A stretch of 64,000 nucleotides of DNA from Dicyema japonicum. Lineage: Eukaryota > Animalia > Dicyemida. Location: NCBI GenBank assembly GCA_011109175.1, contig RDEW01000022.1:353834-417833 (forward strand), written 5' to 3'. Below the pieces are notes generated by a model. The model was not told the DNA's origin. It did not search any database and saw only the letters and a program-made list of their open reading frames with translations. Below, piece after piece: positions 1 to 64,000 of the stretch. Each line of letters begins with the position of its first letter. Positions within the stretch are counted from its first letter, which is position 1. The translations under genes and the position numbers were made by a program.

Positions 1-1100
1 AGAGCCATAATCTTCCGGTGAGCAGTTTCCTCGGTATCGAGTCAAAAGCTTTCTGTATGTCAATGGAACACATCATGGTCTTTTGATGCCGAGGTTTGCA
101 TTGTAGGCTTTCCTTGATGAATTTCGTCAAGCAAGTAAGGTGGGTAGTTGTGGAGCGAGCTTACTTAAATCCACATTGGAAGGATACGTCTGGGAGGTAA
201 GGTTTAATTTGATCAAGAATGAGTTCTAGGATTTTGGAGGTAGCACATAGGAGGGATATTGGTCTGTACGAAGCTGGTGAGTCCTTCGGCCGTCCAGGTT
301 TTAAGATAGGTCGAATATGTGATAATTTTCATAAAGTAGGAATGTAATTTTTACATTATGGAGAAGTTGTAAATTCTGGTCAAGGCCAAGATGGTTTAGG
401 GGCCTATCTTCTTAATTACTATAGAAAGGATTCCATCTGGAACACTTGCGTAAGGTGATTTCTGGTTTTGAATAGCCTTCCGCACGACGTCCATTGAAAG
501 ATTGTTCATGGTTGCGTCGCGTATTGGTTTTATTGAAGATGTGGGAGGTGGCTCAATTTTCTGGTGAGAGATGAAGCTCACGGAGGAATAAACTTTCATG
601 ATCTTGTTTAAAAAGTTCTTGTTCTCTAGGTCTTCGCAAGAAGGCGGTCTCATAAAGTTGGTAAAGTCCCGAAGAGTATTCCACATCCTTGTAAGGAAGG
701 ATTGTTTGTTTAGGGTGTACATGAGTTATTCTTTCCTGTTTCATCTTTCTGATCTCTCTCCAAAGCTCGGATCCTCGCCCTGGTTTCCCAAGATTGATTC
801 TGTAGGCTTTTTAGGCAATTTCTTACCGCCTTTAATTTGCTAGGCTGGTTGTGTTTGAGAGATCTATGATCAAAGAAATGATATCCATTATACGTTTTTC
901 CTTTTTTTCTACGATGCTCTTCTTTTAGTAACTTAAAGAAATGTGGATTTATTTTGATATTCAAAAGGATTTACGTCTTTTACCGCTGAGCGAAAGAAAT
1001 GATCTGATTCGATGCCGCAAAGAGTGTCGAACTCAAAGCCGCTATTTTGGGTTGCAGACTGGGAGTTTATTCCCTCTCCTGATAAAACGGTTAATGGATT
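1..1100 (-). mobile_element. Decayed APE-RT non-LTR retrotransposon (Ingi/Vingi-like), 5'-truncated in the APE domain and running off the window start
   Basis: Minus-strand frames give the APE C-terminal 'DTLCGIESDHF' (~980-1030), linker 'MWNTLRDFTNF', RT domain-0 'AIQNQKSPYASVPDGILSIVIKKIGP' (ORF 396-722) and broken RT motifs downstream. Confidence 0.8.
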
Positions 1101-2000: not shown

Positions 2001-3279
2001 GATGCCTTCTATTGATTATCCCTATTTTTTTGAATTTTGATTAAGTTAATTTATTGTTACGTAACCACTATATTTAATAAATTCAATTCATCCATATCAT
2101 CGAGGAGTAGTAATGTTTTCGCTACTTAAACTTCAACATATCATAACTCACATTTTTTAAGAAATAAGAACAGTTATGATAAATAATCCAAGATACAGAG
2201 AGTCTTCTTTTTTTATTGCGTGTGTCCCCGGGGCAATTCTGTTCCTCAGTGATGCATCATTGGCATCACTCGTCAATTCAAGGAAACACTAACAAATTAT
2301 GTAGTCTTATTGTTTAGTGCTGTGTAATGTTATGTAATATAATCAATAATATTATTGTGCACTCTGATCTCTTAAATTTTTAAATAAGTATTTTCTAAAC
2401 TTATTAATAATAATAAAATATCACGCTATCTGCGACTATTGTTAACTATTGGAAATACTAGGAATAGAGCTATCCCCAAATTATGTGATCCCAATATCAG
2501 TGTTTAGCTCTATTTCTCTCATGATCATCAAACTTGTGATTTGTCGTTATCATTTAGGATATACGTGCTACTGAGTAGACTCATTCTTGAAAATGCAAGA
2601 GTAGTAAAATGACGTGAAAGATATCTTGTTCATTGGTGAGATGATATTCTCCATTAACAGAGTCATAGTTTATATTACAAAGTCTGAGAATACTGTTGAT
2701 TTGAATAATATTTCCTTAATTCTTTATAGCCCTTAAACTGCCTATAAAGAAATTTCTTGGTTAACGAGGGAATACTATGACTAAGGTGGAGATTCCTGAC
2801 TCTGAACTTAAAATTTTGGATTGGGACATCTTAAATGTGAGATGTGGGATCAAAGAGAAGGGATCCTGTGGTCTATGCATTAGTTAATGGGCTCGTTAGA
2901 GTCAATTCAAAACTAAAAGAGTCAATCTTGCTATATAAGATTGAGTCATAGGGCATTGATGGGAAATAATACGATGATGCCATCGCCACGATTTCTAACT
3001 GGAAAATTCTGGAAGTTGATAAAGTGTTTAATTTATCAAAAATTTTCATGCCTTCTCTAATCCATGTATTATTCCTCAATGGCAATGGGATCACGTAACC
3101 GATTCCTAAAGTAGACAATCATAAATAACTCAGTGAGTACAGACAGATTACTTATACGTCAATGGCATACTAATTAATGTGCAAATTGGTGGCGAATAAA
3201 ATTAGAAAATATAAATGAAATCTTGTCTGCAAATCAGTTTCGAGGGTAGAAGTCACCTCTTTAATACGCATGGATTATC

Positions 3280-12180: not shown

Positions 12181-13860
12181 TTTCGTGGAAATTAGTATTT
12201 TTAATCTGAAATATTTATGACAAAACTTAACGTAAATTAAGTTTTGGTTGATAGAAGACCGGCTATTCTGAAGTCTTTATTCCAATAAATCGAATTTGTA
12301 TTATCCGTTTTTTATTTCTTCTACATAAGTCACTACGGTTGCATCAAAGATACTTGATCAGATTTTGAACACTTTTCTTATTTTAATGTGTGATTTGAGA
12401 ACTTGTGAGTTTGTGATTTGAAAAATGTCCTTGTGTTAATAAATGAGTCTTTATTTTTGTTTTTGTTAATATGTAGAATGATTAAGTATACATGAATCCA
12501 CGTCTATATAGGACATACACCCAACAAAAAGAAAACAAAAAAAGTGAAGAGCATTCTTTGATTCCCCCTCATCGATTAGTTATGATAACCGTTTTTTGCT
12601 CAAAATAAAGTGCGTGTTCTGCCTGAGGGGAACGATAGCTGATATAACTTCTCGGAAAGTGTATTTTTTATATAACCCAAGAAGCATCGAGAAATTTGGT
12701 AACCAAACTAATTAGGTGACCCTGGGTCCAATTATTTTTGATTTTCCATTTTAGTCTGGAAAAGGACCTTTATCTGAAATCTTTTCTCTAATGATGTAAA
12801 AACTAACTTTATATAATTGTTTGCAAAAAGGTAGCAAAAAATTGTTAAATAATGAAAAGTTATATTTAATACTCCAAGTGGAGATAACTATTATTAGCAC
12901 AAATAATCCAAATATAATCCTGTACCTGCTGTTTCGAAAAATCAAATTTCCATTAAAGCACTTGAATTTGAATCCAAAGTTCAATTGTAAGTCGCGCACG
13001 TGATACAATAATGAGTTATTCTATATTAATTTGTAGTCTAATTAAATATATTAAATAATATTAAAATTAATTTAAATTAGTAAAAAGCATGCTTCTATGT
13101 TGTGTGATGAATGTTATCCTGCTTATATGATTTGTGATTATTGCAGGGGCCATCTGACAATAATAAACTTTATGCTTTTATCATAACTAGAAATATAGAG
13201 GAAGACATAGAATAACTTTTCGCCTACCATCCATGTCTGCAGTGTTCGCTAACCAGACAGATTGAGCTTATTATCTACGTAAGACTTATGTTGGCATGTG
13301 AAGAGAATTAATGACTGTCATATTGGTCAAATTAAAACTCTGGATTATCGAAGCAACTCGGACTATGAGTACATCAAAAGGAATCTTACAAAGATTGTGA
13401 CAAAGACAGAAAGAAGTCAACTGCGGTGTTGAAGTCACTTCTACGTTTTCATCCATTTCCTGAGGTTTTTCTGTATGCATATTTAGAGAGTATTGCGCCA
13501 CTCTTAATTTATTGTTTTCAATGATCAAGGCATCGAGAGGAATCTATAAGATATGCTATCAAGAGATACGATGTCTCATATAAATTGACCCATTATCTTT
13601 AGTTAAAATTGATAATAAATTTCATGGTTTTTTGGTTCTTTGAGTTTGATGAGTAATGAAGAATTCTCTGTTTTCTCAGCCACGTTTGTCTTTATGTTTG
13701 ATGAATTATTCAAAAGATCAAGAGTAAAATTTATCTTGTCTGAACATCGTGTCCATAATATCCACCATTGTAAGAACCCCTCCAATTAAGTAGGGAAGTG
13801 ACAGATCAGTGTCAAACACGCGGTCTTCGACATTCATAGGTTCGGCCTGCATGCGGACCT

Positions 13861-15922
13861 TATTTATTTAACACCCAAGACCACGGTAAAACCAAAACTA
13901 ACTATCACGTGATCCCAATGCGTTCCGCCAAAATCCTCATTCTTTCCCGATGCTCTTCCCTCGTACCCACACAAACTCTTACTGGGCGGCTGACTGTATT
14001 TGCAGGGCCACCTTCCCGCATGCCGGAGTTTTGTTTAATGAGGGCCTCCAGAGTAGTCGGTCCGGTTCTGTGTCTCCCACAAGACCACCGCTCCGTCATT
14101 CTGAAAGCTTTCTTTTGCACCGTCTGGGAGAAGACGCGAGACTGATTTCAGTCCTCCGAGGCATACACGTCCCCTCCGTCCACTTAAGAAATTTGTTATC
14201 CAAAGTTTAAGCTTCCCCGGGATCTCGGACAGGAAAATTTTCTTTGATAATATTTTTATCGAAATATAATCAAAGGCCTTGTTAATATCAATGAAGATAA
14301 GACTGTTTTCAAATGCCTTGGTTTGTTTGAAAATCCATCTCTAATGAAGTTGGTTAATTTCAGTAGGTACGTTGATGTAGAACAATCGCTCTTGAATAAG
14401 TGTTGAAAATCCTTTTCTGGTAAGAAAGCCTAGATTCTACCCAGCACAAGCCTCTCCAGGATTTTCGATATGGAACATAGCAATGACACAGGTCTAAGTG
14501 ATGCCGGATCTTCCTTAGGTTTTCCAGGTTTCAGTATAGGTCGGATGTTGGCTTGCTTCCATAACAACGGTATTACATTACAATTAATGAGTAGTTGAAA
14601 ATCGACGTTAGAAAACTACTCTCATATCTCCAAGGTTCTTCAATAACCCTACTGGAATGTTGTCGGCACCGGCAGAGTACGCTGTTTTTGTAAACGCAGC
14701 GCATTCTTCACGTATTCATCCGAGAAGTAAACTGGGTTAGAATACTTTTTCAGATTTATGAGTAAAAAAAGAAGCACATCCGACTTCCTGAGTTCTTTGT
14801 ACGAAATTTTAGTGTAGAATTTTATCAACTTGTTACGTCTCGTTGAGTATAGTCATCCTTGGGGGAAGTTTTTACGCCCTATGCAACATTTCTAATGGCT
14901 TTACACACTTCTCCGGTAGTACGGTTGCGATTTACCTATGTAAAAATCCAATTCCATTTATATTTCTGGACCTAGAATTCTCTGACCTTATTTCGTTGTT
15001 TAAAGCTCTGATCCAGATATTCGTTTCTTATGTGATCGATTTAGAATTTTCGAGGTGAATTCTTTCTTTGATCAATGACGACTTCCCTAGACCATTAGAG
15101 AATTTAGGCGATTTTTGGGAAAAGCCAATGATCTTGCTTTTAGGACAATGCAAGTAAAATATTTGATTGCTTCTTCTAGCGATTTGAAGCTGACCAAGTA
15201 ACAATTCATCAGTCTATCATCAGAGATTGCGCGATGCAATTCCCAATTAGCAGCTTTGTAGTTATAACTAGCAGGTGTTCTCCTCACTCTGACTTCTCTC
15301 ATGACCTTCATCACAATTGGATTATGGTCGCTTCTTGTATCGTATAGGACTGACCATCTGTTCAGGATTCTCGACCCCGCCGGACTCGTCCTCACCTTTA
15401 TCGGTCTGGGATCACTTAGTTAGATGAGAACTTTTATTTCTTTCTCTTTGACCCAGTGATCCTGGGGTAATAATAATAATAATGAAAGCGACGATGAACA
15501 GAGTGCTACATCCGGTGAGGTTTGAATAGAGTAATTAGTCCACCCCTTCTTCTCTTTTTACGGTCCATCCTGATAGCCTCGTATCCAGGGAATGAAGGAG
15601 TGGAATCATTCATGCGGAGTTTATTTTCTTGAATCATGGCCACGTCGATCTTCTGAATTGCCATGGTTGAGCGGAGATCCCTGACCTTGTTTTTAATTCC
15701 GTCGATGTTCAATTGGTAAGCAGTAAATTTCCTTTCTCCACAGTGGGCGTAGGGTCTTCACCGGCAATGTTAGGACTTTTTTGAAGCACATCGCAGGGGG
15801 TCGATAATGACCCCGGGAGGAAGAGGTCTAATGGTTTTTTTCCGAAGGGCATTAGATGCCCTCTGGGCGTTACCAAATCCCTTTGAATTTTTTGAATTAG
15901 TGGACCACATAACGCCACGCTA
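13861..15922 (-). mobile_element. Ingi/Vingi-like single-ORF LINE with both ends and internal deletions
   Basis: 5' leader at 15832-15916; APE start 'MNIDGIKNK...DVAMIQE'; 'SDHNPI...YNYKAANW'; RT 'LWKQANIRPILKPGKPKEDPASLRPVSLLCSISKILERLV'; C-terminus '...RMRILAERIGIT*'; tail TTAAATAAATA. Confidence 0.9.
15358..15483 (+). mobile_element. Short 3'-end copy of the 63 kb LINE family, inserted antisense into the APE region of another LINE
   Basis: About 125 nt matching 63019-63144 (reverse complement) with 2 substitutions and 1 indel; ends in (TAA)5. Confidence 0.9.
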
Positions 15923-24182: not shown

Positions 24183-26045
24183 TTAAACATCAAACACAGT
24201 GTCATAATATGAGTCTTCAATACATGATAATTCACGATTATGTTCACTAAGAGCTTTATCTCTTATATTATCCAGACTCGAATAAAACCCTTCAATATTG
24301 AATAGATTAGACAGTCCTGGTGCTTCAAGTATTTGCCTGTGTGAGTGGTCCACTGAAGTCAATAGTTTTTCAAAATCCTCTATTTTCCGTGATTGCTCCT
24401 TTCTTCTGTTTATGTATTTCATCAACAAATCCATACAAGTCTCCCCCGTTCCTGGATTTTTGTAAATCTCCAAATTATAATCATTTCATACTTTTCTATA
24501 AGAAAGAGTCTCCAGGATTTTCTGGTGAGTCTCCGGGACCACTTTTTCAGTCCGAATCCATCGTTTGTATCGCTCAGACTGCGCACGTGGGCTGTTTATC
24601 CATTTCCTCAGCTACAATCTTTAAAATAACAACCGATCTTTGAATAACACAGGCAGCTTTTGTTCTCTTTTGAAAATCCGCTTCGAATTCCGAGTTTTTC
24701 TGTGAAACACACCTCCGCCACCACTGTTGAATCACCACTGCAGCCTCGACACGTGTTCTCAATTGATAGTCTCTTATGTTCACTGTAATACTTAACATGA
24801 TCAAATACTTGCTGGAACTTGTTGCATTCGAAAGTAATCTCTTTCCTTGAACTGACGAGAAATAGAAATCCCACTAAGGGATCTGTTCATTTCGTCGTAG
24901 AGCTCCAATTCCTCAGTTCTTTTTAGTTTGTGTCTCTGCTCAATATTGGCCCTGGAAGTAAGAAAACACCAACTTGAAGTTTTTTTTGATTAAAGTGACA
25001 ATTTTCGTAAGACTTTCAATGTCTTTTCGGATTTTGTGACCTCGCCAAGCCGACTGAATACAAATAGCAGCTTCCTCTTCTTTGGCCAACTTTGAAAATC
25101 GTCTCATTCGTCGATTTATCTCAACCTTTGCTTCATATGTGGAGATTATCCGTTCCAACTCATCGTCAAGACCTTTTCCCTCCCATTTCTCAAGGGCATT
25201 TATTAGCACTTGTTCATTTACCACCTTTTCAACCTCTCTCGAAGACTTTAGCATCCCAATAACTCTGAATAAGCAATAAAATGCCAATCTTAATATTACT
25301 ACGTAACCAACTTGCAGTTTTACTAACACTCGTGATAATAGTTATGTCCAAAAAATACCCACATAGACTACTTTGCACTTCAAAATTCAAATCTGTTTTG
25401 TCTAAATATGTAATTTTGATAAATTCAAGGCAAATATCAAAAAGACCCTCATTTGTCACACGTGAGAGCACCATTGCCGTATTTTGTATAAAGATAACTA
25501 TTTTAAAAAGCCAATAAAACCAGAAAAATCAATTTTTGGATAGTTTTCCTTTATTTTCCCCATATTAGCAAAAAGAACTTTGCACGTATCAACCAGATTG
25601 TTCTGTCGTAGTGACTAAATTATATTTGTCCAGTTTTACGTATTCCGGGAAATAATTGATATCAAGAGTTATCTTATCGATTAAAGTCACAATATCTTCC
25701 AACAAAGCTTGTAATTCCTTAGCAAATTGACTAGACTCCAGGTCCTTGGCACAAAAAACAGCGAAACTCAGAACATTTTTAATCATTTTCCACTTTCCGT
25801 AAATCGCAGAGAATTCGTTGCTAAAGAGGATGGCAAATATTTCATGGAAATCATGGGAGATGATTATATTCTTTATTATGATAGACTAAGCCTTTGACAT
25901 TGCAGTTTCTACCCTTTCTGTCAGTAATTTATTGTAAAGTACCTTTTAATGTTAAAATATATTTTTGCATTTCCTCGATGGGGGAATTTAACATTTTTTT
26001 GCAAATTTCATTTACAAAATCTTCATGAATGCAAGTTATAGACAT
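24183..26045 (-). CDS. IQCB1: IQ calmodulin-binding motif protein 1 (nephrocystin-5)-like ciliary protein
   Basis: Three IQ-type motifs in NPHP5 order (EAAICIQSAWRGHKIRKDIESLTKIVTLIKKNFK; EAAVVIQQWWR; KAACVIQRS) and C-terminal 'RQILEAPGLSNL...DKALSEHNRELSCIEDSYY'. Start position tentative. Confidence 0.75.
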
Positions 26046-26249: not shown

Positions 26250-27800
26250 TCATTCTTAAATATGTCCAAACAGACATCACTCCAAGATTTACACAACGCT
26301 TGGCGTAATATCGACCTGATCAGTAACTTACACAAGATGCGACCACAATGCCATTCTTCTAAAGATCAAAAGAGAAAGTTTAACTACGAGGAGGTCCCCA
26401 GAACAATTCAACAACAAATGTGCAGACTGGAAACTTTACCGTACACTTACTGACAAACTACTGCAGTACCTGGATGACAGTACTTCCATGACAAAGTAAA
26501 CCACACTATCTTGCATGCGAGATCCTTGTACCTAACACCACCTTAACTACATTAGGAACAAGGTAGGTCGTCATTAATCAAGGACAGAAACCAACGCAAA
26601 AGATCTGTCCCATTAACTATTGAGGATAAGCTTAGACTGAGGGTTTTAAGTAATGAATTAAAAAACAGGAGATCAAAGCGCAAAAAACGAGATGGAAGCA
26701 TGTGCTCTCTTCTTTGAATGAAAATAGATCCATTGCTGAAGCGTGGGAGACTATTCGAGACGCCTCAAGTGAGAATTAAAGATCATCTGAGGTGGATCAA
26801 AAGGATTTGAATAATCTCATAAAATATTAAGTGAAAATATCCAATAAGGACCATAAGAAGTCGGAACATATGAAGACTGTATTTTGCTCTATTGACGTCC
26901 ACAAAGTTATTGACTCTGTGTCAAGGAGGATTCTTACTTGGAAAATTTACCAAAAAAGATCCCTGAAAAGCTTAAGGTCTGGTTAGCTAACTTCCTTAGT
27001 GGTCGGAGGGGACGCGTCTGCAATGGCCAGTCAAGATATATCTCCCGGCTTCTTCCTAATGGAATTCCCCAAGGATCCCATTTATCTCCATTATATTCTA
27101 TTTATGGCGGATCTCCCCACGCATGAGATCGGTATGATATTCTCTGACTTATGCCGATGTAATTGTCATTCGGTCACGATATCAGGAAATCCAGATTGCT
27201 ACTTCGAGATTGCAACAAAATCTGGACCGTCTTAACGAATGGTTATTGAAGAATCGCCTGTCTACCAGCATCGAGAAGTTCGTCACAACTCCCTTTACAT
27301 CAGACATGACACTGGGAAGACAGGCGGTCGATTTGAAAGCTAACAATGATGTTATCCAGTTTAGAAAATCCCGAAAGATCCTTGGGGTGACTTTTGACAT
27401 GCACATTTTATTCTCCCCCATGTTGAAAATGTGAAAAAACCAATGCTTCGAAATGTCTATATGGATTATGGAAGCTAGGAAATAGCCCTATCCTGAATAC
27501 TATTTACAACAATTCATTAAACCTGCATTTCTTATCCATGTGGCATCTGGGATCCATTCATATCTTGGACAAATGTCTTGAAGATCGAGTCTAGCTGAAA
27601 AATAGCCTCCAAAATTACGAAACGATGGACTTCTGGTGAGTCCCAGCCTCCAATGTCTCTAAAATCCATCATACGCACGGAACGTGACGTCGTGACTATG
27701 AAGATCCAGTCATTCGGCCGATACGTGCTTGTGTGGGGTCGAGAGAGAGCATCGGGTCAAGTTGAGCTGCTGGGATCACTTGATTAGTTATTTTGTGTAA
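26250..27800 (+). mobile_element. Ingi/Vingi-like LINE, internally deleted; same family as 57617-60552
   Basis: Colinear nucleotide similarity to the reverse complement of 57650-59700; 'WLANFLSGRRGRV...PNGIPQGSHLSP', 'KILGVTFD'; ends CTGGGATCACTTTGATTAG. Confidence 0.9.
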
Positions 27801-29719: not shown

Positions 29720-30145
29720 AGTGCTGGAAGGGTTATTGACGAATCGAGTCTAAGAATGATCAAAATCCTTCTAACACAGAGCTCCTTGTGAGAGTTGGAA
29801 AAACCTACTCAAGACAATTTGAAACAAACACACGCACTCCATGAGGAGACTCCTTCTCTCCGCTACTATTCACAATATACTTGGAGGCCGCTATGAGGGA
29901 ACTGAGACCATTATACCAAGGAAAATTAGAAGTGATTTATACTGATGATGTCGACCTAATCTCCGAAGACAAAGAACTCCTGGAACATGTACTAGAAAAA
30001 GCACAAGATATACTTGGGAAATGGTTTCTAACCGTGAACAGGGAAAAAACAGAACGGACAGAAAAAAGACGAATGAATAACTAACTCGAAGAGAAATGGA
30101 GACACAAAAAAAACTTGGCTCCTTATTAGGAGATAGTGAAGATAT
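29720..30145 (+). mobile_element. RTE LINE RT fragment (same family as 50535-51353)
   Basis: 'LEAAMRELRPLYQGKLEVIYTDDVDLISED...LTVNREKTE...KKLGSLLGDSEDI'; near-identical to 50560-50800. Confidence 0.9.
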
Positions 30146-30899
30146 CATTTGCTCCTATTAGAGATGGAGAACATAATGTAAGGTCAGGAGATGTATTTGA
30201 ATGTCGAGGTCTGGAAGCTGTAAGAGTGTGTGATTTTCTGTCATTGTGAATAACTAATTGTTCTAGCTGAGAGAGGACCTGAAACCCCCTCTCATTACTT
30301 TTTTGGCCGATTAGCCAGAGCGGATCTTTTGCATTTAGGTCTCCGCAGATTATCACATTTTCAATCTTTTGCAATTCGGTAAGTTTTGGGGAGTAATGTT
30401 TCATACTGGGACTTGGTGGTGGGATGTAAATATTTACAAATGTATACCTTGTGTGGTTTATTTTCACCAAGACGGAAGTAAGTTCGATGTGATTGTCATA
30501 TTCAAACAGAGCTTGTGTCTGAGAGGAAGTATCGGAGAATGGAATAGATTTGTGTATGAGTATGAGAACACCGCCTCCTCTGTTTGAATTAGGTTGGAAG
30601 TGCAAAAAGTTCAGCTGATTTGTGTGTGAGGCCGTTTATGTTGAATTGCATGATATTGAGGAATTTCCAGTTATTGTGGGGCTCGGGGTTCTGTTCGATG
30701 TCCCCAGCAAGAATTAGGAGTAGCCAATCCGATCTTTGGGAGCGAAAGCTACGCGCCCGCTCAATAGTCGCCATTATCCAGTCCGACTTCCCAGAAATCG
30801 TTGTAAAGGTTGACAGTGGAATAATTGTGGTTCTCTTTGTTGCCAGATTGATACTGATATCCAATTTTCTCTACGTGAAGGTGAACCACATCGAAAATT
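30140..30899 (-). mobile_element. Ingi/Vingi-like LINE 5' portion: structured leader, 2A-like peptide and APE endonuclease
   Basis: 'WLLLILAGDIEQNPEP' followed by 'IMQFNINGL', 'RGGGVLILI', 'FVNIYIPP', 'IICGDLNA' and 'SPDLT'. Confidence 0.9.
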
Positions 30900-30960
30900 A
30901 CCCTAATGTTATAAACTATCATTTTTATAACGCAAATAAATCACTGCGCACAACAAAATA

Positions 30961-32594
30961 TTATATGTTAGTGTGCTGATGAGAAAAGCAGTAAAGGAGC
31001 CCCTTCGGTCTGGGATCACTTAGTTGAGAACTTTTATTTACCCTCATTCTATCTCTTTGACCCAGTGGGGCAACATGGCAATAAACACAATAATTAATAA
31101 ATTTTTTAATAATATTAAAGTATTCAGTATCAATATTATCTATTCTCTCAATAACAGGTAATTTATCACTACAAGCAGTAAACCTGACTGTAAATAGACA
31201 GGACAGACCAAATATTACCCTCTGAAAGTCACTCATAATCTGCAATCCATACCCTCCTTACCTTATTGAGGACAGTTCTTCCCTCCATGGTAGAAAATTG
31301 ACTCTACAATCATAAAACAAACAACCTCGGCCCAATCAGCAGAATAACCAATCAACGATCTCAATACCTACAAAATACACACACAACACACGTGGTCATT
31401 CATTTCACAGTCAACAGTCCCACTCCCGTCGTTTATTCTCACATCCAGGGACCATCCAGTTCCTCCATTACTTGACAACTTTCCCAATAATGTAATAATT
31501 TGGCACTACAATCATCACCAACCTAACCCTGAAAGTAACTTGTTCCTCAATCGTCTCCATTTTCTTCACCTCGGAAATATATGTGAACGGAAAATTGGTA
31601 AGGGGAAACTCCTCACAGCAAGCTTGCAAACTCAAGTCTTCCGTAAAATCAAAGTGGTACTCAGTGTCCTCAAAAATGTTATCCCTTCAATAAATACGAC
31701 ATAAACTCCTCAGAACAAGCCATTTCAAACGTCTCAAGTAGACTGTCGTAAATTTCCACACCACTTTCCGCAGATTTTGCAGGAATCTGCGGATCTCTAG
31801 AGTAAATTAGTAGAATACTTAAAGTTATTCACTTCAGCACCAATATTGTCGAAATCGTTAGCAAATCCCTCCTCTGTTCCGAAATCCCTAAGAATAAGGA
31901 GTAAGACGACAGTAAATGTTTCAGAAAGTCAGCATATTTGTAAGTAGTGATATGGTTGGACTCAAGTATTTGAATGTTTGGCTTTCTCAGCAGTAAAATG
32001 CCATTTCTGCAAAGAATTGATCCGGAAATGACCACCAGAGTAAACTAAGCCAAAACCTTTGTGCCAGGACTAAGAAGGGTAGTCAATTTAGGAATAAAGT
32101 CACATTCAGTAGCCTTGAGTTCTACGGTTCCGTCAGTCAAACGTAGTACAATTTGTTTTTTGTGCGTCTCTGTTAAAAACTACAAATACGTGTTTTGGAA
32201 AGTTTTCATATTCTTCTTCGGTTTCTTCTGTTTGGGAATACTGACTGTAGAAAGAACGACTCACATCTACCAGGGATTTTATCTGTATTTAGCCAAATTG
32301 TTAACCTGTAAAGCGAAAGTTCCTTTGATGAGGTCTTTTTCGTGGTTATAACTGGGAAGGGAAGGTTCTGTGGAGTTTTTAATATCGGAGACAAGCCACT
32401 GCTGGTATATCAACATTAAAATTGTGTTGCAATCAAATTCAGTAGTCTTTATAAGATTTAAGTAAAACTTGAAAAGAAGTAGTGAGCCACTCAGCACAAT
32501 TTGAAATCCAACTCGGAAACAATTTAGCTCCATAATTGATATTGAAAAATTCCAGTATTTTACCAACATCAAAAGAAACCACCATTCCCGCCAT
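30961..32594 (-). CDS. RMI1: RecQ-mediated genome instability protein 1
   Basis: Spliced: 'WISNCAEWL...IYQQWLVSDIK...GTFALQIKSLVDVSRSFYSQ', 'VLRLTDGTVELKATE..IPKL..LLSPGTK', 'CRNGILLLRKPNIQIL', 'FPFTYISEV' and 'GWSLDVRINDGSG...LIGYS', i.e. both OB folds of RMI1. Confidence 0.88.
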
Positions 32595-32639: not shown

Positions 32640-33760
32640 CATAAATAACATTCTAACAATTTCTCCCAACACCGAAAGTCCAAAATGATATTATCACTTA
32701 TGCTGAATTATCAAACAAGCAGAGACACTTAAAAACAGTGCTCTTCTCGATCGACATACATAAAGCGTTCGACTCAACTTCGAGGAAGATACTAACGAGA
32801 AAAATATTTCAATCAGAGATCCCAGGGAAGCTCAAGCTTCCTAAGTAGACAAATAGGACGTGTATGCTTCGTAGGACTAGAATCCATCTCACGTCTTTTC
32901 TCCAACGGAGTCCATCAAGGATCTCCTTTATCCCCATCTCTGTTTAACTTTTTACCTCTGACAAAAGATTGGGAATGAAGATAGTCACCATGAAGTTAAA
33001 CAAAGTTGACATTTCTTTAACAGATGTCAAAGGATCGTGACAATTGATGTGCATCTTTGTGTATCACCACACGTATAAAATATTTTTGTGAAATGTGAAA
33101 AAAACTGAACTTATTAAAAAGTTTATCAGAAATATGGAAGATTGGTACCCACCCTGTCATGATGAACGTATACAGACAGTGCATCGAGCTGTGTTTCTTA
33201 TATGCATGTACCTTATAGGGACAGTACATTTCTTGGACAGATATGAGAAAGATCGAGGAAATACAAAAGAGAGCTTTCAGAGTAACGGAGCGTTGGATTT
33301 GTGGATATCATCGAACCGGACCGACGCGTCTGGAGACCCTTATGAGATTAGACTGTAGAATGCAGGAATGCGGCTTCGTAAATTCAGTCATCCGTTCTAT
33401 ACGATCATACAAGCAAACTACCGCTTCGCTACGGCTTTCGGATTTCATGTCCAATTGGAGCCGCTTAGAACAGCCAACCGAAGACCAATGCAAACTACCG
33501 CTTCGCTACGGCTTTCGGATTTCATGTCCAATTGGAGCCGCTTGGAACAGCCAACCGAAGACCAGACGGAATTACTTTTTTCCCATAGGAAATTGGTAGA
33601 TACCTTGGCTGGAATGCCACTTGTGTGGGTAGCTTCTCTCCCTCGAACTTTGTTCTTACAGCAACTAACCCAGGATCTGCTTCGGAGAAGGCTGAGACCT
33701 TAAAGATGAAGAAATACATATGTCTCGGTGGACAGTTCATTTTTTAACCAGTCGCCGTGG
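32640..33760 (+). mobile_element. Ingi/Vingi-like LINE fragment (RT to C-terminus, deleted)
   Basis: 'SIDIHKAFDSTSRKIL', 'NGVHQGSPLSPSLFNF' and a C-terminal region homologous to the 13.9 kb copy ('KRAFRVTERWICGYHRTGPTRLE'). Confidence 0.8.
33413..33564. repeat. Tandem duplication, 77-bp unit x 2, inside the LINE
   Basis: GCAAACTACCGCTTCG...CCGAAGACCA at 33413 and 33490; one mismatch. Confidence 0.95.
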
Positions 33761-33789
33761 AAACGTCAGGAATCATAGGAAGCAGGTCA

Positions 33790-34290
33790 CTAATCCTGCT
33801 AAACATATTCGGTCTACCTATCCCTTTTATCGTTCAATCTATTCACAGCAGATCTGCCTATTCCAGAAAGCAAAAACTATAATTTATTAACCTAGCAGAC
33901 GACATTGTTCTGGCCTCGTGTGATCTGGATATTCAGATTGCCACATCAAGATTCTATTAACACCTGGGTCGTCTTAACGTTTGGTGAAAAAACAACTGCC
34001 TATTATTTAGCTCTGAAAAATAAGTCACTAAGTTATTCACTTTTCACAGAAAATTAAGCAGACAGACGGTAGAGCTAAAATTGGATAATAAAAAGACCCA
34101 TAAAATTCTGGGAATCACTTTTTTACAACGCGTATCAAGTGTGAAAAAGTCTAACTTTCTGAAAAGTCTCTCAGAATTATGGAAGGTCGGAAACCATTCA
34201 GTCCTGAATTTTGTATACAACCAGTACATTTAACCATGCAACTCTTATGAATGTGGTTTCTAGGCCCCATTAAATCCTTGAAGCTAAAAG
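33790..34290 (+). mobile_element. Second LINE RT fragment (Ingi/Vingi-like)
   Basis: 'NLFTADLP', 'ADDIVLAS' and 'KILGITF', degenerate. Confidence 0.6.
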
Positions 34291-40674: not shown

Positions 40675-41689
40675 ATTATTATTATTAATAAGCTTAAAAT
40701 CACCAGGTTAACTGATTAAAAAGAAAACGCTATCAGGTGATCTTGGCTTCTCTCAGCAATATTCTCATCTCTTACCGGTGTTGCTCTCGGGACCCGACAC
40801 ATTTTCGATAACACCGTTCATCTGGCGGTTTTCCATTTTGGGTGAATATGCCGCAGGAATTCATCACAAGGAGTTCAAATATGGTTGCCCTTATTGGTAG
40901 TCTTGTGAGTCGGGAGATTGTTTAGGTCAAATTGGATTCGGCGGAGTTGATCATATCCATGTTTGTTTTGGCTGATAATGAATTGGGTGTATAACGCTGA
41001 TAATGACTGGATTGAGGATCCTTTAAATTTTGAGACGAGCATTCGTGCCGAGGAACTGATTACGTTTGACACAAGTGTGCTGAAGGTCATGAGTCAAATG
41101 TTACTCCCATAATCTTGGCTTGTTTCTTATTTGGATTAGTTCACCATTCGAAAATAGTTCAACCGAATAGCTTGATAGCCTTCTATTAAAAAAGAGAAGT
41201 AAAAGACTTTTCTGTAGACGTTGACATTGAATTTCTTTTCAACCATTCATGGAGTCTTTCCAGAATAGTTTGCAATTTCTTTGTAACTGTCGTAGCACAT
41301 GTATCCTTGCAAGTATATATTATGTCATTCGGTCGAACTGGCAGTCTTCCAGATAACAGTGTATCTGGGAAGTGTTTGGATTGGTTGAAGAGTGTGTTAG
41401 CATGGTCTCCAATAAGAGACACACGTCGACGTCGTATTTCTTTAAGAAGTTCCTGAGCTCAATTTTCTTCCATATATGTTGAGTTGAAGGATGGAAAGAG
41501 ATTTCGCTGGTCCAGGATTAGATTTGATGTCTCCAGAGATGAGAGCGTTCTTAACAGGTCACATGAGTAGTACTGAGAGAGCCGTCCAAGAGAGACATTC
41601 TTCTTGGATTGGGGTGAGCAAATGATTCTTTTAACTGTGTGACTAATCCCACAGTTGGCGCCACCAGGAACGGCAAACCACATGACGCC
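40675..41689 (-). mobile_element. ~1-kb internally deleted Ingi/Vingi-like element retaining both ends
   Basis: 5' leader, 'ISGDIKSNPGP', APE start 'ILQLNI', a jump to RT 'LERLHEWLKRNSM', C-terminus 'EMRILLREAKIT*' and tail TTATTAATAATAAT. Confidence 0.85.
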
Positions 41690-57610: not shown

Positions 57611-57616
57611 AGCTGA

Positions 57617-60552
57617 TAATAATAATAACACCAGAGACCACGGTTACACAAACTAATTAATCACGTGATCCCAGCACACATTAGCAGAAACCTCATCTTG
57701 GCTCGATGCTTCTCCCTCGACCCCACACAAGCACGTATCGGTCGAGTGACTGGACCTTCGCAATCACGACGGCGCGTTCCATGGTTCACTCGTATCAAGG
57801 CTTCAAGTGGCATTGGTGGCTGTAACGCTCCAGAAATCCAGCTTCCGTGAGTTTGGAGACTCTTTTCCGGCTAGCCTCGATCTTCAGAACATTCGTCCAA
57901 GAGATGAGTGGGCCCATATACCACATGCATAAGAGATGCATGGTTCAATGAATTGTTTATATACAGTGCTCAAAACATAATTCTTTTCGATCACCATAAG
58001 CCTGTGAGGCATTTCAGAACAGTAGTTTTCTTTTCGCATTTTGTAATTACGTTCTCAATATGGAGAGAGATGACATGTGCATGTCAAAAGTCACCCCAAG
58101 GATCTTTTGAGATTTTCTGAAAGGAATAGCTTCATTGTTTGCCTTCAGTTCGACCGTCCGTCTTCCCAGTCTCTTGTCTGAAATAAATAGGGGTGTGACG
58201 GACTTTTCACTGCTGGCAGTTAGGCGATTCTTCGATAGCCATTCATCAAGACGGTACAGGTTTTCTTGCAATCTCAAAGTGGCAATCTGGATGTCCTGAT
58301 CGCGTGACGCAATGACGATGTCGTCGGCATAAGTTAGAATATCATTTTCGGAGTCTGGTTTGGGAGGTCCGCCATGAATAGGTTGAATAAAACTGGAGAT
58401 AAAGGGGATCCTTGGGGAATTCCATTAGGGATAAGCCGTAAAATAAACCTTGACTGGCAAATGCAGACGCGTCCCCACCAACCACTAAGGAAATTAGCTA
58501 GCCAAAGTTTGAGCTTTCAAGGGATCTTTGTTTGGTAAATTTTCCAAGTAAAAATCTTCCTTGAAGCAGAGTCAAAAGCTTTGTGGACGTCTATGGAGCA
58601 AAGTACAGTCTTTATGTGTCCCGGACTGTGCGAGAAACTATATCGTATAAAGTTAGTCAATGCAGTTAAGTGGGTCGAAGTAGACCTTTACTTTTTAAAA
58701 CCATGTTGAAAATGACAAGTCCGGTAGGAATTTTTGATTTTCGCAAGAACCAGTCTTTCCAGAATTTTCGACACCAAACACAATAACGCGACCGGTCTGT
58801 ATGAAGCTGGGTCCTTCTTCACTTTACCGGGTTTCAAAATTGGACGTAGGTGGGCAAGCTTCCATAAGACTGGAATAGAATTTTTGTTAATAGTGGTTGA
58901 ATATTTTCGTTAATGCAGCGATTCCATAGTCTCCAGATTCTTTAGGAGGATCATTGGGATCTTATCCGGTCCGTTAGAATAGGTTGTTTTAATGGCTTTC
59001 AATACATTTCTCACGTCGTTTTCAGTGAAGTGAATCGTATCCGGTTCCTTTTTCAGTTTACTGAGATATTTCGGGGATACATCCGACTTCTTATGATCTT
59101 TATGGGTATTTTCACATAGTATTTTATTAGGTTAAGTCCTTTTGGCTGTGGTCCACCTCGGACGATCTTTCATCCACTCTTGAGGCGTCTTAGGTGGTCT
59201 TCCAAATTTCAGTAGTGGGTCTATTTCAACGAGGAGAACACATGCTTCCATCTTGATATTTGTGTCTTTACCTCCCTGTTTTTTAATTAATTGTTCAAAG
59301 CCTTCAGTCTAAACTTATCCTCAGTAGTTAATCGGCCAGATTTTTTGAGTTCGTTTCTTTCCTTGTTAATGCTGACCTGCCATATCCCCTGGTGTAGTTA
59401 AGGTGGTGTTTAGGTACATATAGTGATCTCGCATCCAAGATAGTGCGGTTTACATAAGCGAGTACTTTGTCCATGGAAGTAATGCCATCTAGGTACTGCA
59501 GTAGGTTGTCAGTAAGTGTACTGTAAAGTCTCCAGTCTGCGCGTTTGTAGTTGAATTGTTCTGGGGACCACCTCCTAGTTGACGTTTCTCTCTTGATCTA
59601 AAAAAGGATCGCATTATGGTCACTTCTTGAGTTGTAAATGACTGACCAAGTCGATATGGCGGCCAGGCCGGAAGAACAAAACGTGATGTCTGGAGAAGTT
59701 AGTTAATCTGACTCCCTGAAGGGGGTTCTCGTATGTTTTGACGGGTCATTCATGACCGTGAAAGGTCCTGTCTGTGAAAGTAGTACTTTTCCTCTGAGTC
59801 GGACGGTTGACTTGCCAGCCATAGATTGTGTTTTGTGTTGATACCCCCCCCCCTCCAATGATCATGTGGTTCAAGAAAACCAAAGTAGATAAATTAGGCA
59901 TATTGTAGCTTCGGGCAAGAACCAGGTGGAGGCACATAGACGTTCACAAAGGTAATTTTTCCATTTGTTGTTCCAAGTGAGACTGCATTGACTTCAGTAA
60001 CATCGTCGTCTCCCAAGATATTCTTCACCACTGAAATGATGTCTACACATTTAAGGTCTTTCCGATATAAAATGAGTAGGACACCTCCCCGCTTCCTCTT
60101 CCGGTCAGTCCGTATTGACTTGTATCCAGGAAACACCTGTGTAGGACTGTTTATAGGCAGTTTCGTCTTTTGTATATCAAAGCTACTCCAAGTTGCAACG
60201 GAGAGTGGAAGAAACTCGTTCATGAGATCTCCAATGGTCGGACACGACTTAATTGGATAACATAACATATTCGTCTCTTGTATCAAAGCCACGTCGATCT
60301 TCAGCTCCGCCAGGAGAAAGCGTAGTTCCAATATTTTGTCCCTTACTCCATTGATATTTAGTTAAAGAACCGTGGTCCGTTTCTTGCGGTGAGCTAGTGG
60401 TTCTTTCCGGGTAGATGAGGATGATAGTGCGTGCTGCCGGCTAGACAGTTTCCTCGGAGGTAAATGTTTAATGGTTCTCTTTGGAGGGACATTAGGTGCC
60501 CTCTAGGCGCTACCAATAATTACAGAATCGGTGAACCACATAACGCCACGCT
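57617..60552 (-). mobile_element. Near full-length (~2.9 kb) single-ORF Ingi/Vingi-like LINE, decayed
   Basis: 5' leader; APE ('LNINGV','DVALIQET','FVNVYVPP'); RT ('PILKPGKVKKDPASYRPVALLCLVSKILERLVL','ILTYADDIVIASRD'); C-terminus ending ...GIT*; (TAA)n tail. No ORF1 or RNase H seen. Confidence 0.92.
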
Positions 60553-60747
60553 AAAATTTGAATTGTACATCTTTGCTACCTCTCAACTTATGGAAGTGGC
60601 ATGCCATGAGGACATCCCTCTGGACTCTAACAAAGATATTTCGGTTAACTCTGATGTGGAGATGGGGAATAAGAGGGAGTTGATGGCACAATCTTTTTCT
60701 AAGACAGTGTTTCTCAAACTGGGTTCCGCGGTCCAAAAAGGAACGCC

Positions 60748-63018: not shown

Positions 63019-64000
63019 TTATTATTATTATTACCCCCAGGATCACTGGGTCAAAGAGAAAGAAATAAAAGTTCTCATCTAACTAAGTGATCCCAGATCG
63101 ACAAAGGTGAGGACGAGTCCGGCGGGGTCGAGAATCCTGAACAGCTCTTCTCATAGGACATGGCATCGGCTCACAATTTCTGTATGATTGTAGATAATTC
63201 GATAGTATTTGGAATAGAGGGCAGCTCGGTAGAACAGCCTCCTTTAATAGTTTTCGTTGTATTTCAATTAAAAAATTTTCAATAGGTTGGATGTTGTGAT
63301 CTGGTCCAATTAACCTCATTGCAGTCTCCTCGATTGCAGATAACTTCAATGTGGAAGATCGTGACATTTGCATTGCCCATGAAGGACTTGCATACGTCTT
63401 CGTTGGTCGGATGAATTGTTTGTATATCGTGGCAAGGATCCCAGTTTGATCTCTAAATATTTTGAGAGCACTTTTAAAATTCTTAATTTTTTCAGAGCAG
63501 AAGTTACTCTGTTTTCAACATGCCGGATAAAGGTGAGTCCCTGATCAAAGGTTACTCCCAGAATCTTCGGTGTTTTGTTAATAGAGATAGCTTCGTTCTT
63601 CATTTTGGTTCGATACAGAGCTGTCTCTTGTAGGTGGTAAACAGTGTGACAAAGGACTTTGCTGCTGATTTGTCAAGTCTCCGCTTCGAGAGCCATAGTT
63701 CCAAGTTATCGAGCATTTGTTGAGCCAACTGAGTCGCTGATTGAATGTTCTGTCCTTGGAGGCAAGAATGATATCGTCGGCATATGAGAGGATTAGACAG
63801 TTTTCATTACAGGTTTGTGGCATGTCGTTTATGTAGAGATTGAAGAGTTGGGGTGATAGTGGTGAGCCTTGAGGGACTCCATTTGGGAAATAGCGAGATC
63901 TTGATTTGATGTTGTTGCAGAGCACTTGTGCTCGTCTTCCATTTAGGAAGTTTCCAAGCCAAAGTTTCAGGTTCGGATGGATGTTGGTTTCATATATTTT
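63019..64000 (-). mobile_element. Ingi/Vingi-like LINE, RT to 3' end
   Basis: 'PNGVPQGSPLSPQLFNLYINDMP...ILSYADDIILASKD', 'KTPKILGVTFD', '...LCRSGIT*' and a (TAA)n tail. Confidence 0.92.

Follow-up and report, generated by a model that had tools for sequence, protein, structure and literature searches.

The window, a 64,000-nucleotide (nt) stretch of the genome of the dicyemid Dicyema japonicum (contig RDEW01000022.1, positions 353,834 to 417,833), contained four long interspersed nuclear elements (LINEs), or parts of them, on its minus strand. Each was headed by an RNA fold with the topology of the hepatitis delta virus (HDV) ribozyme; the four folds and their elements are referred to as s1 to s4. 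The s1 LINE (57616..60553) was a decayed element of ~2.94 kb with one open reading frame (ORF), in which an AUG, a leader, an endonuclease domain (APE), a reverse transcriptase (RT) and a 3' module (GGGATCACGTGAT...GGTGTTA(TTA)n) followed one another. The s2 LINE (13860..15922) was likewise decayed, had an internal deletion, and ended in the same 3' module with an (AATA)n tail. At s3 an ORF start was found (30129..30891) comprising an AUG, a leader, a 2A-like GDIEQNPEP and an APE domain (Exo_endo_phos_2, 2e-11, Pfam), with one in-frame stop. The s4 element (40675..41689) was a bipartite non-autonomous derivative of ~1 kb, in which ~360 nt of 5' end including a 2A were fused directly to the C-terminal part of the RT and the 3' end, with a (TAA)n tail.

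Pfam matches on the LINEs (Exo_endo_phos_2 and RVT_1) corresponded to APE and RT. The APE regions were only ~33% identical between copies, s1 versus s3 included, and the 2A was present in s3 and s4 only. No ORF of at least 60 amino acids was found in the ~150-350 nt that separate the RT fragments from the 3' tail. The length of s1, its APE and RVT_1 domains and an ORF running from the head would fit a tentative Vingi-like placement. No target-site duplications that would fix the 5' ends were recognisable, the (TTA)n-like tails blending into AT-rich flanks.

The reported fold, s1, occupied 76 nt (60472..60547, minus strand) and paired at 7/7 positions in P1, 6/6 in P2 and 3/3 in P3. Its P1 (60547-60541, GGCGUUA) was followed by J1/2 (60540-60539, UG), so placed that an AUG lay at 60541-60539, and by P2 (60538-60533, UGGUUC), P3 (60532-60530, ACC) and a 15-nt L3 (60529-60515). 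The P3' strand (60514-60513, GG) was completed by a U common to P1' (60512-60506, UAGCGCC), after which came J1/4 (60505-60504, UA), the P4 hairpin (60503-60484, GAGGGCA-CCUAA-UGUCCCUC), J4/2 (60483-60478, CAAAGA) and P2' (60477-60472, GAACCA). The s2 fold (15832..15916, minus strand) was of the s1 type, with an L3 of 24 nt, a P2 down to 4 bp and a J4/2 without C (GGAAAAA). The s3 fold (30826..30899, minus strand) had P1 AAUUUUC/GAAAAUU, P2 UGUGGUUC/GAACCACA, L3 UUCACGU and J4/2 CAAAGA. A minimal 67-nt version was seen at s4 (41623..41689, minus strand), with P1 GGCGUCA/UGGCGCC, P3 GCC/GGU, a 6-nt L3 (GUUCCU), a P4 stem of other sequence and a J4/2 again without C (UUAAAA).

The strand order P1-P2-P3-P3'-P1'-P4-P4'-P2', a nested double pseudoknot, could be drawn in 4/4 copies, and AUGUGGU was identical in all of them. 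A re-reading of the letters bore out the helices that a first-pass annotation of this DNA had described at s1 and their recurrence at the other three sites around an invariant AUGUGGU, all on the minus strand. The s1, s2 and s4 folds shared the J1/2-P2 and J4/2-P2' blocks of s3, together with a UUC opening L3. No further copies were found in the window when the 12-mers described below were searched with 2 mismatches allowed. Protein searches by word index, for which APE pieces of s1 and s3 were the queries, gave no match, the exact two-block pattern had no match in metagenome or viral contigs, and ~60 kb from elsewhere (two Octopus sinensis loci, L003 and L008, and contig L009) held no copy.

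P1 paired at 7/7 positions in 4/4 copies using three different sequences, with one G.U each in s1 and s4. P2 paired at 6/6 positions in s1, s3 and s4 (two G.U in s4) and at 4/6 in s2, and P3 (RCY/GGU) at 3/3 in s1, s2 and s4 and 1/3 in s3. P4 was a good stem in s1, s2 and s4 (-8 to -11 kcal/mol) and a weak one in s3 (-1.4). Nested minimum free energy folding recovered P1 and P4 in s1, s2 and s4, and P2 in s3; fold z-scores were -1.4 (s1), -3.9 (s2), -2.5 (s4) and -1.1 (s3).

Variation of P1 and P4 with pairing kept, also claimed by the first-pass annotation, took three forms. At P1 position 6 the U-A of s1 and s2 was a C-G in s4, which is one compensatory pair; the whole of P1 was swapped in s3 between conserved flanks, with all 7 bp Watson-Crick; and the P4 of s4 was wholly different in sequence yet stem-forming. 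In shuffled sequences a 7-bp Watson-Crick helix in the geometry of the s3 P1 arose by chance 1.0% of the time, and at random genomic placements 1.8% of the time. MAFFT, given only four sequences, set the s3 P1 and P1' out of register with those of the other copies. Two exact 12-mers, ATGTGGTTCACC and CAAAGAGAACCA, were common to s1 and s3 and occurred nowhere else in the window, and the two copies were unrelated in sequence between and before these blocks. In the alignment of s1 with s2 the head was the stretch of highest conservation.

Helix-order descriptors by themselves had no significance in window DNA, which is AT-rich (36% GC): a loose P1/P2 descriptor gave more than 1000 chance matches, a fuller one ~35-40 per strand, and another 141 matches in 327 kb. 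The case for the fold therefore stands on the comparison between copies.

The invariant AUG, located at the junction of J1/2 and P2, is probably the start codon of the LINEs, as its reading frames suggest. The ORF ran through the whole knot, and the AUG was in frame with the endonuclease ORF in s1, s2 and s3. The AUG and the AAG-AGA-ACC block were 60, 72, 54 and 51 nt apart in the four copies, multiples of three in 4/4, which means that the length changes of L3 and P4 were all in frame. The s1 frame read MWFTDSVIIGSA*, then one more stop, then the start of APE (LNINGVRDK...) in the same frame. In s2 two stops preceded an in-frame APE start (YQLNIDGIKNK), and in s3 one stop was followed by ...LLILAGDIEQNPEP (2A-like) and MQFNINGL in frame. 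The s4 frame was open for 74 codons, with the 2A (ISGDIKSNPGP) in frame +2, a shift presumably due to decay. J4/2-P2' coded for K-R-T (s1, s3), K-K-T (s2) or K-R-I (s4), each in the AUG frame. The peptide linking MWF to KR(T/I) was unconserved, so the constraint acts on the RNA.

Since the ORF begins in the head, there is no space for an ORF1, and the proposal that the HDV topology heads ORF1-less LINEs with APE and RT agreed with both the Pfam matches and the position of the ORF start. The idea of a leader RNA in the sense of a purely untranslated leader was not sustained, the fold being coding and holding the probable start codon.

The four copies differed in the part that forms the catalytic core of known HDV-like ribozymes, in which cleavage occurs at the first P1 nucleotide and the core is built from L3 and J4/2 (PMC4908430). 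The s3 copy, with L3 UUCACGU (7 nt, with C-G) and J4/2 CAAAGA, has what reads as an ordinary HDV-like core with a decayed P3. The short L3 with a U...C-G core was lacking in s1 (P3 3/3, L3 15 nt), s2 and s4. Candidates for P1.1 were UC/GG in s3, UU/AA in s4 and one trivial pair in s1 and s2, all too short for statistics. An atypical core in three copies had been noted in the first pass and was seen again here; the accompanying view that their P3 had been replaced was not supported, since a normal 3-bp RCY/GGU P3 can be drawn in s1, s2 and s4, with the extra bases in L3.

Relatives of these elements came from a full HMMER search in which a piece of the s1 RT was the query; it returned few LINE proteins, six of them with an N-terminal 2A. 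Contigs for five 2A-bearing proteins, metagenome contigs among them, were taken from public assemblies (L004, L005, L006/L007, L010 and L011). A compact HDV-like fold was predicted in the leader upstream of the 2A, at or just before the ORF start, in all five, with an L3 of U-N-N-N-C-G-N (7 nt in all) and a J4/2 of C(C)RAA. The L004 fold (2991-3076) had P1 GGAGCGA/UCGCUUU, P2 GAUGCA/UGCAUC, P3 GCC/GGU, L3 UGCACGU and J4/2 CAAAU, with an ATG within P2 and a J1/4 GC able to pair with the GC of L3. L010 (42-108) had P1 UUCCCG/UGGGAG, P2 GCUGCA/UGCAGC, P3 GCG/CGU, L3 UAUACGU and J4/2 CAAAC. An L3 of UCUACGC was common to L011 (2038-2125; P1 CUUCCA/UGGAAG, P2 GGUGCCG/CGGCACC, P3 GCC/GGC, J4/2 CCAAAU) and L005 (1534-1612; P1 CCACUU/AAGUGG, P2 GUGUCC/GGACAC, P3 GCG/CGU, J4/2 CCGAAAA). 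L006 (169-250) had P1 UGGGCCU/GGGCCUA, P2 GGAAGA/UCUUCC, P3 GCG/CGU, L3 UGUUCGA and J4/2 CAAAG. L002, the closest full-length relative by APE, had no 2A, and no fold was found in its short upstream stretch.

A compact descriptor, which required six or more base pairs in P1, five or more in P2, a spacing of 11-15 nt from P2 to P1' and CRAA before P2', matched 211 times in 327 kb on both strands. Adding the L3 pattern xxxUxxxCG reduced the matches to 8, of which 7/8 lay in LINE leaders (s3 included) and 1 was stray; the L3 pattern had first been noticed on the same folds and was then scanned, so this test is not fully independent.

The relatives had the same helix order as the window copies, and the last base of P3' doubled in P1' in L004 and L010 as it did in s1, s2 and s4. 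Their L3 of 7 nt equalled that of s3, versus 15, 24 and 6 nt in s1, s2 and s4; unlike the window copies, they showed no sequence similarity to the octopus-type P2 block. The suggestion of a divergent ribozyme class gave way at this point: s3 has the compact core of the relatives, and because s1, s2 and s4 share the P2 and J4/2 blocks of s3, they are derivatives and not a new class. A series from a canonical to a remodelled core is the simplest reading of the copies. Directly upstream of the L004 fold (L004:2640-2990), ~four head-to-tail repeats of ~120 nt were seen, the last of which stopped at the first base of P1.

Directly upstream of P1, 3/4 copies carried a hexamer, UAGSGU. In s1 this was UAGCGU (60548..60553, minus strand), common to s2, and in s3 it was UAGGGU (30900-30905, minus strand), abutting P1; s4 had AAUUAA in this place. 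The similarity of s1 and s2 began exactly 6 nt upstream of P1, at TAGCGT, so the expectation of a start of similarity at or just upstream of P1 proved right, with s4 lacking the hexamer. The hexamer was not repeated after the 3' tails and is thus not a target-site duplication. An extension of P1 through it was tried and rejected, as s1 had no complementarity after P1' and s3 would gain at most one U.G pair.

We regard it as fairly probable that the 76-nt s1 fold is the 5' head of a decayed APE and RT LINE, an HDV-like double pseudoknot descended from the leader ribozymes of the relatives, and that s3-type ancestors would have cut whereas s1, s2 and s4 would serve a mainly structural role. Judged from its sequence, s1 most likely works like an HDV-like ribozyme or descends from one; because it has neither the compact L3 nor an element 5' end at P1, it is not classed as a proven HDV-like ribozyme. 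Catalysis appears plausible for s3-type ancestors and doubtful for the s1 type.

We infer roles of the knot in cleavage, protection, translation and promotion along the following lines. In s3-type ancestors it would cut the transcript at the P1 base and so release the LINE RNA from upstream read-through. The product would begin with a 5'-OH tucked into a stable knot, the AUG lying ~10 nt further in, and such an end may resist exonucleases and permit cap-free translation. Copies of the s1/s2/s4 lineage would have kept P1, P2, J4/2 and the reading frame through a remodelling of the P3/L3 core. The knot of these copies would then be mainly structural, offering end protection, start-codon presentation and possibly a DNA-level internal promoter, and would cut weakly or not at all. 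Such weak or absent cutting would explain the six conserved bases upstream of P1. A more specific version holds that in s1, s2 and s4 the ribozyme fold has turned into a non-cleaving start-codon knot (a cap substitute, a translation-start element or a dual promoter) kept by selection for a non-cutting job; this we put forward tentatively.

Several observations weigh against the preferred reading as a whole. The hexamer was kept by three copies of divergent families upstream of the expected cut, and a template cut at P1 would lose it. The element 5' end did not coincide with P1, and only s4 fits a start there. In L006 and L007, two insertions of an identical 2A-LINE with different flanks (L006:90-330 and L007:75-315), homology started ~80 nt upstream of the fold, i.e., pre-cut sequence was inherited. 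The L3 C-G motif was absent from s1, s2 and s4, the C of J4/2 was missing in s2 and s4 (both single decayed copies), and in s3 P3 was broken and P4 weak. Conservation peaked in P2 and its flanks, unlike the P3/L3/P1.1 of R2 ribozymes (PMC3774820), and each family is known from one decayed copy. Rfam gave no match for the whole window at the gathering threshold, and s1, s3 and s4 matched only at chance level at E<=10; as the Rfam models also miss the canonical-looking folds of L004 and L006, this silence carries little weight. That the hexamer survived across families implies either an uncut template for copying or a start of transcription at the hexamer. The data would fit either partial cleavage, in which cut RNA is translated and uncut RNA copied, or a knot that no longer cuts.

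Much of this evidence would also be accommodated if the knot did no catalysis in any of the four families and were only a 5' element, whether a start-codon pseudoknot, a 5'-end protector or a Pr77-type Pol II promoter starting at the hexamer, with the HDV topology a matter of ancestry or convergence. The conserved hexamer, the ~80 nt kept upstream of the fold in L006/L007, the remodelled L3 of three copies and the loss of the J4/2 C in two all favour it, as do P2 strands more conserved in sequence than structure needs and the precedent of Pr77, a promoter as well as a ribozyme (PMC3383444). Set against it is s3, whose full L3 U...CG and J4/2 CAAA resemble those of the relatives and are hard to explain without a catalytic constraint that lasted at least until recent times; J4/2 also opens with C in both s1 and s3, and the U of s4 is one transition away from C. 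On balance we consider a wholly non-catalytic element unlikely, if worth keeping in view.

That there is no functional RNA structure, and that coding (MWF(T/A) ... KR(T/I)) or shared descent combined with chance complementarity in AT-rich DNA explains the pattern, gains something from a coding region with in-frame indels, from the many chance matches of loose descriptors and from a sample of four decayed copies, but is very improbable given a P1 that pairs at 7/7 in four copies although its sequences are of three unrelated kinds (for s3 by itself, p about 0.01-0.02), a P4 replaced yet still a stem, helices conserved where the MWF-to-KR(T/I) peptide is not, 12-mers identical even at synonymous sites, and the recurrence of the same architecture and the independent L3 motif in relatives.

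With descent from a LINE ribozyme preferred, the knot is a lineage-specific derivative of LINE-heading HDV-like ribozymes, closest to L1Tc Pr77/L1TcRz plus 2A: a known device in a new host and element group. HDV-like ribozymes head R2, RTE, L1Tc/ingi and a few other LINE clades, and Vingi-like or cephalopod LINEs are absent from the six ribozyme-bearing clades listed in PMC5786205. A literature search for HDV-like ribozymes of cephalopods or Vingi elements brought up no paper. Native Vingi 5' untranslated regions are retained in current gene-writing constructs, the reason being unstated (PMC13708176). Vingi 5' ends (nt 2-74) are reused in the bodies of short interspersed nuclear elements.

The L1Tc element of Trypanosoma cruzi (ingi/L1Tc clade; PMC3185411, PMC3383444, PMC4035085) has a 77-nt head that is both HDV-like ribozyme and promoter; its 2A is N-terminal, and NARTc is its deletion derivative (PMC3383444). 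In L1TcRz the first nucleotide is C1 and P1.1 may be a single pair (PMC3383444, PMC4035085). The elements described here are alike in having an HDV-like head of about this size (~77 nt there) at the 5' end, an N-terminal 2A upstream of APE (in s3 and s4, not in s1 and s2), and a deleted non-autonomous derivative retaining head and 3' end (NARTc and RIME there, s4 here). In neither system does the first base have to form a G.U, and the single-pair P1.1 that L1TcRz tolerates would be the most available to s1 and s2. They differ in that L1TcRz cuts at +1 with nothing conserved upstream, whereas UAGSGU is present here in three copies. Unlike in L1Tc, the start codon here lies inside the knot, the knot is coding, L3 is remodelled in s1, s2 and s4, and the elements are compact at ~2.9 kb.

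R2 ribozymes have a covarying P1 of 6-7 bp, a highly variable P4 and a J1/4 of 0-2 nt, with the catalytic C and four other positions fixed and P3/L3/P1.1 as the conserved block (PMC3774820). The ribozymes of R2, RTE and other non-LTR elements (PMC3774820) resemble the present folds in the nested double pseudoknot, the location at the LINE RNA's 5' end, the covarying P1 of 6-7 bp, a P2 no shorter than 5 bp, a P4 that varies or is missing and a J1/4 of 0-2 nt; the catalytic C that opens J4/2 there corresponds to a C in s1 and s3. In three of the copies the pattern of conservation is reversed, with a variable L3 and conserved P2, J1/2 and J4/2. R2, moreover, is site-specific and co-transcribed with ribosomal RNA, whereas the elements here are dispersed.

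Two questions can be put to a conserved start-codon knot that ranges, within one genome, from a canonical to a remodelled core: what the fold does besides cutting, be it promotion, cap-independent initiation or protection of the 5' end, and whether a ribozyme fold persists once catalysis is lost. For both, these copies form a natural test set.

The first-pass annotation had further combined 2A, the knot and GGGATCAC into a complete set of cis signals for ORF1-less LINEs; as the 2A is not in s1 and s2, the set is not universal. GGGATCAC itself occurred 14 times in the window versus 1.5 expected, e.g., at 57665-57672 (minus strand), 13909-13916 (minus strand) and 31012-31019 (plus strand). It opens the 3' module shared by s1 and s2, GGGATCACGTGAT...ACCGTGGTCT...GGTGTTA, which leads into a tail of (TTA)n or (AATA)n, and ATCACGTGAT is a perfect palindrome.

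More decayed RT fragments were present at 26330-27750 (plus strand), 32700-34260 (plus strand), 63370-63970 (minus strand) and 5-352 (minus strand). These were 45-75% identical in protein sequence to s1 and had no 5' head in the window. In gene model P0001 of Octopus sinensis (L003:6001-15484), a fragment of LINE RT is fused to a protein resembling importin-alpha (IBB, Arm repeats), probably through exonisation of the LINE or as an artefact of annotation. Within the window, open frames with an IQ-motif-like VIQQWWRR at 24577-24990 (minus strand) suggest a host exon near the LINE cluster.

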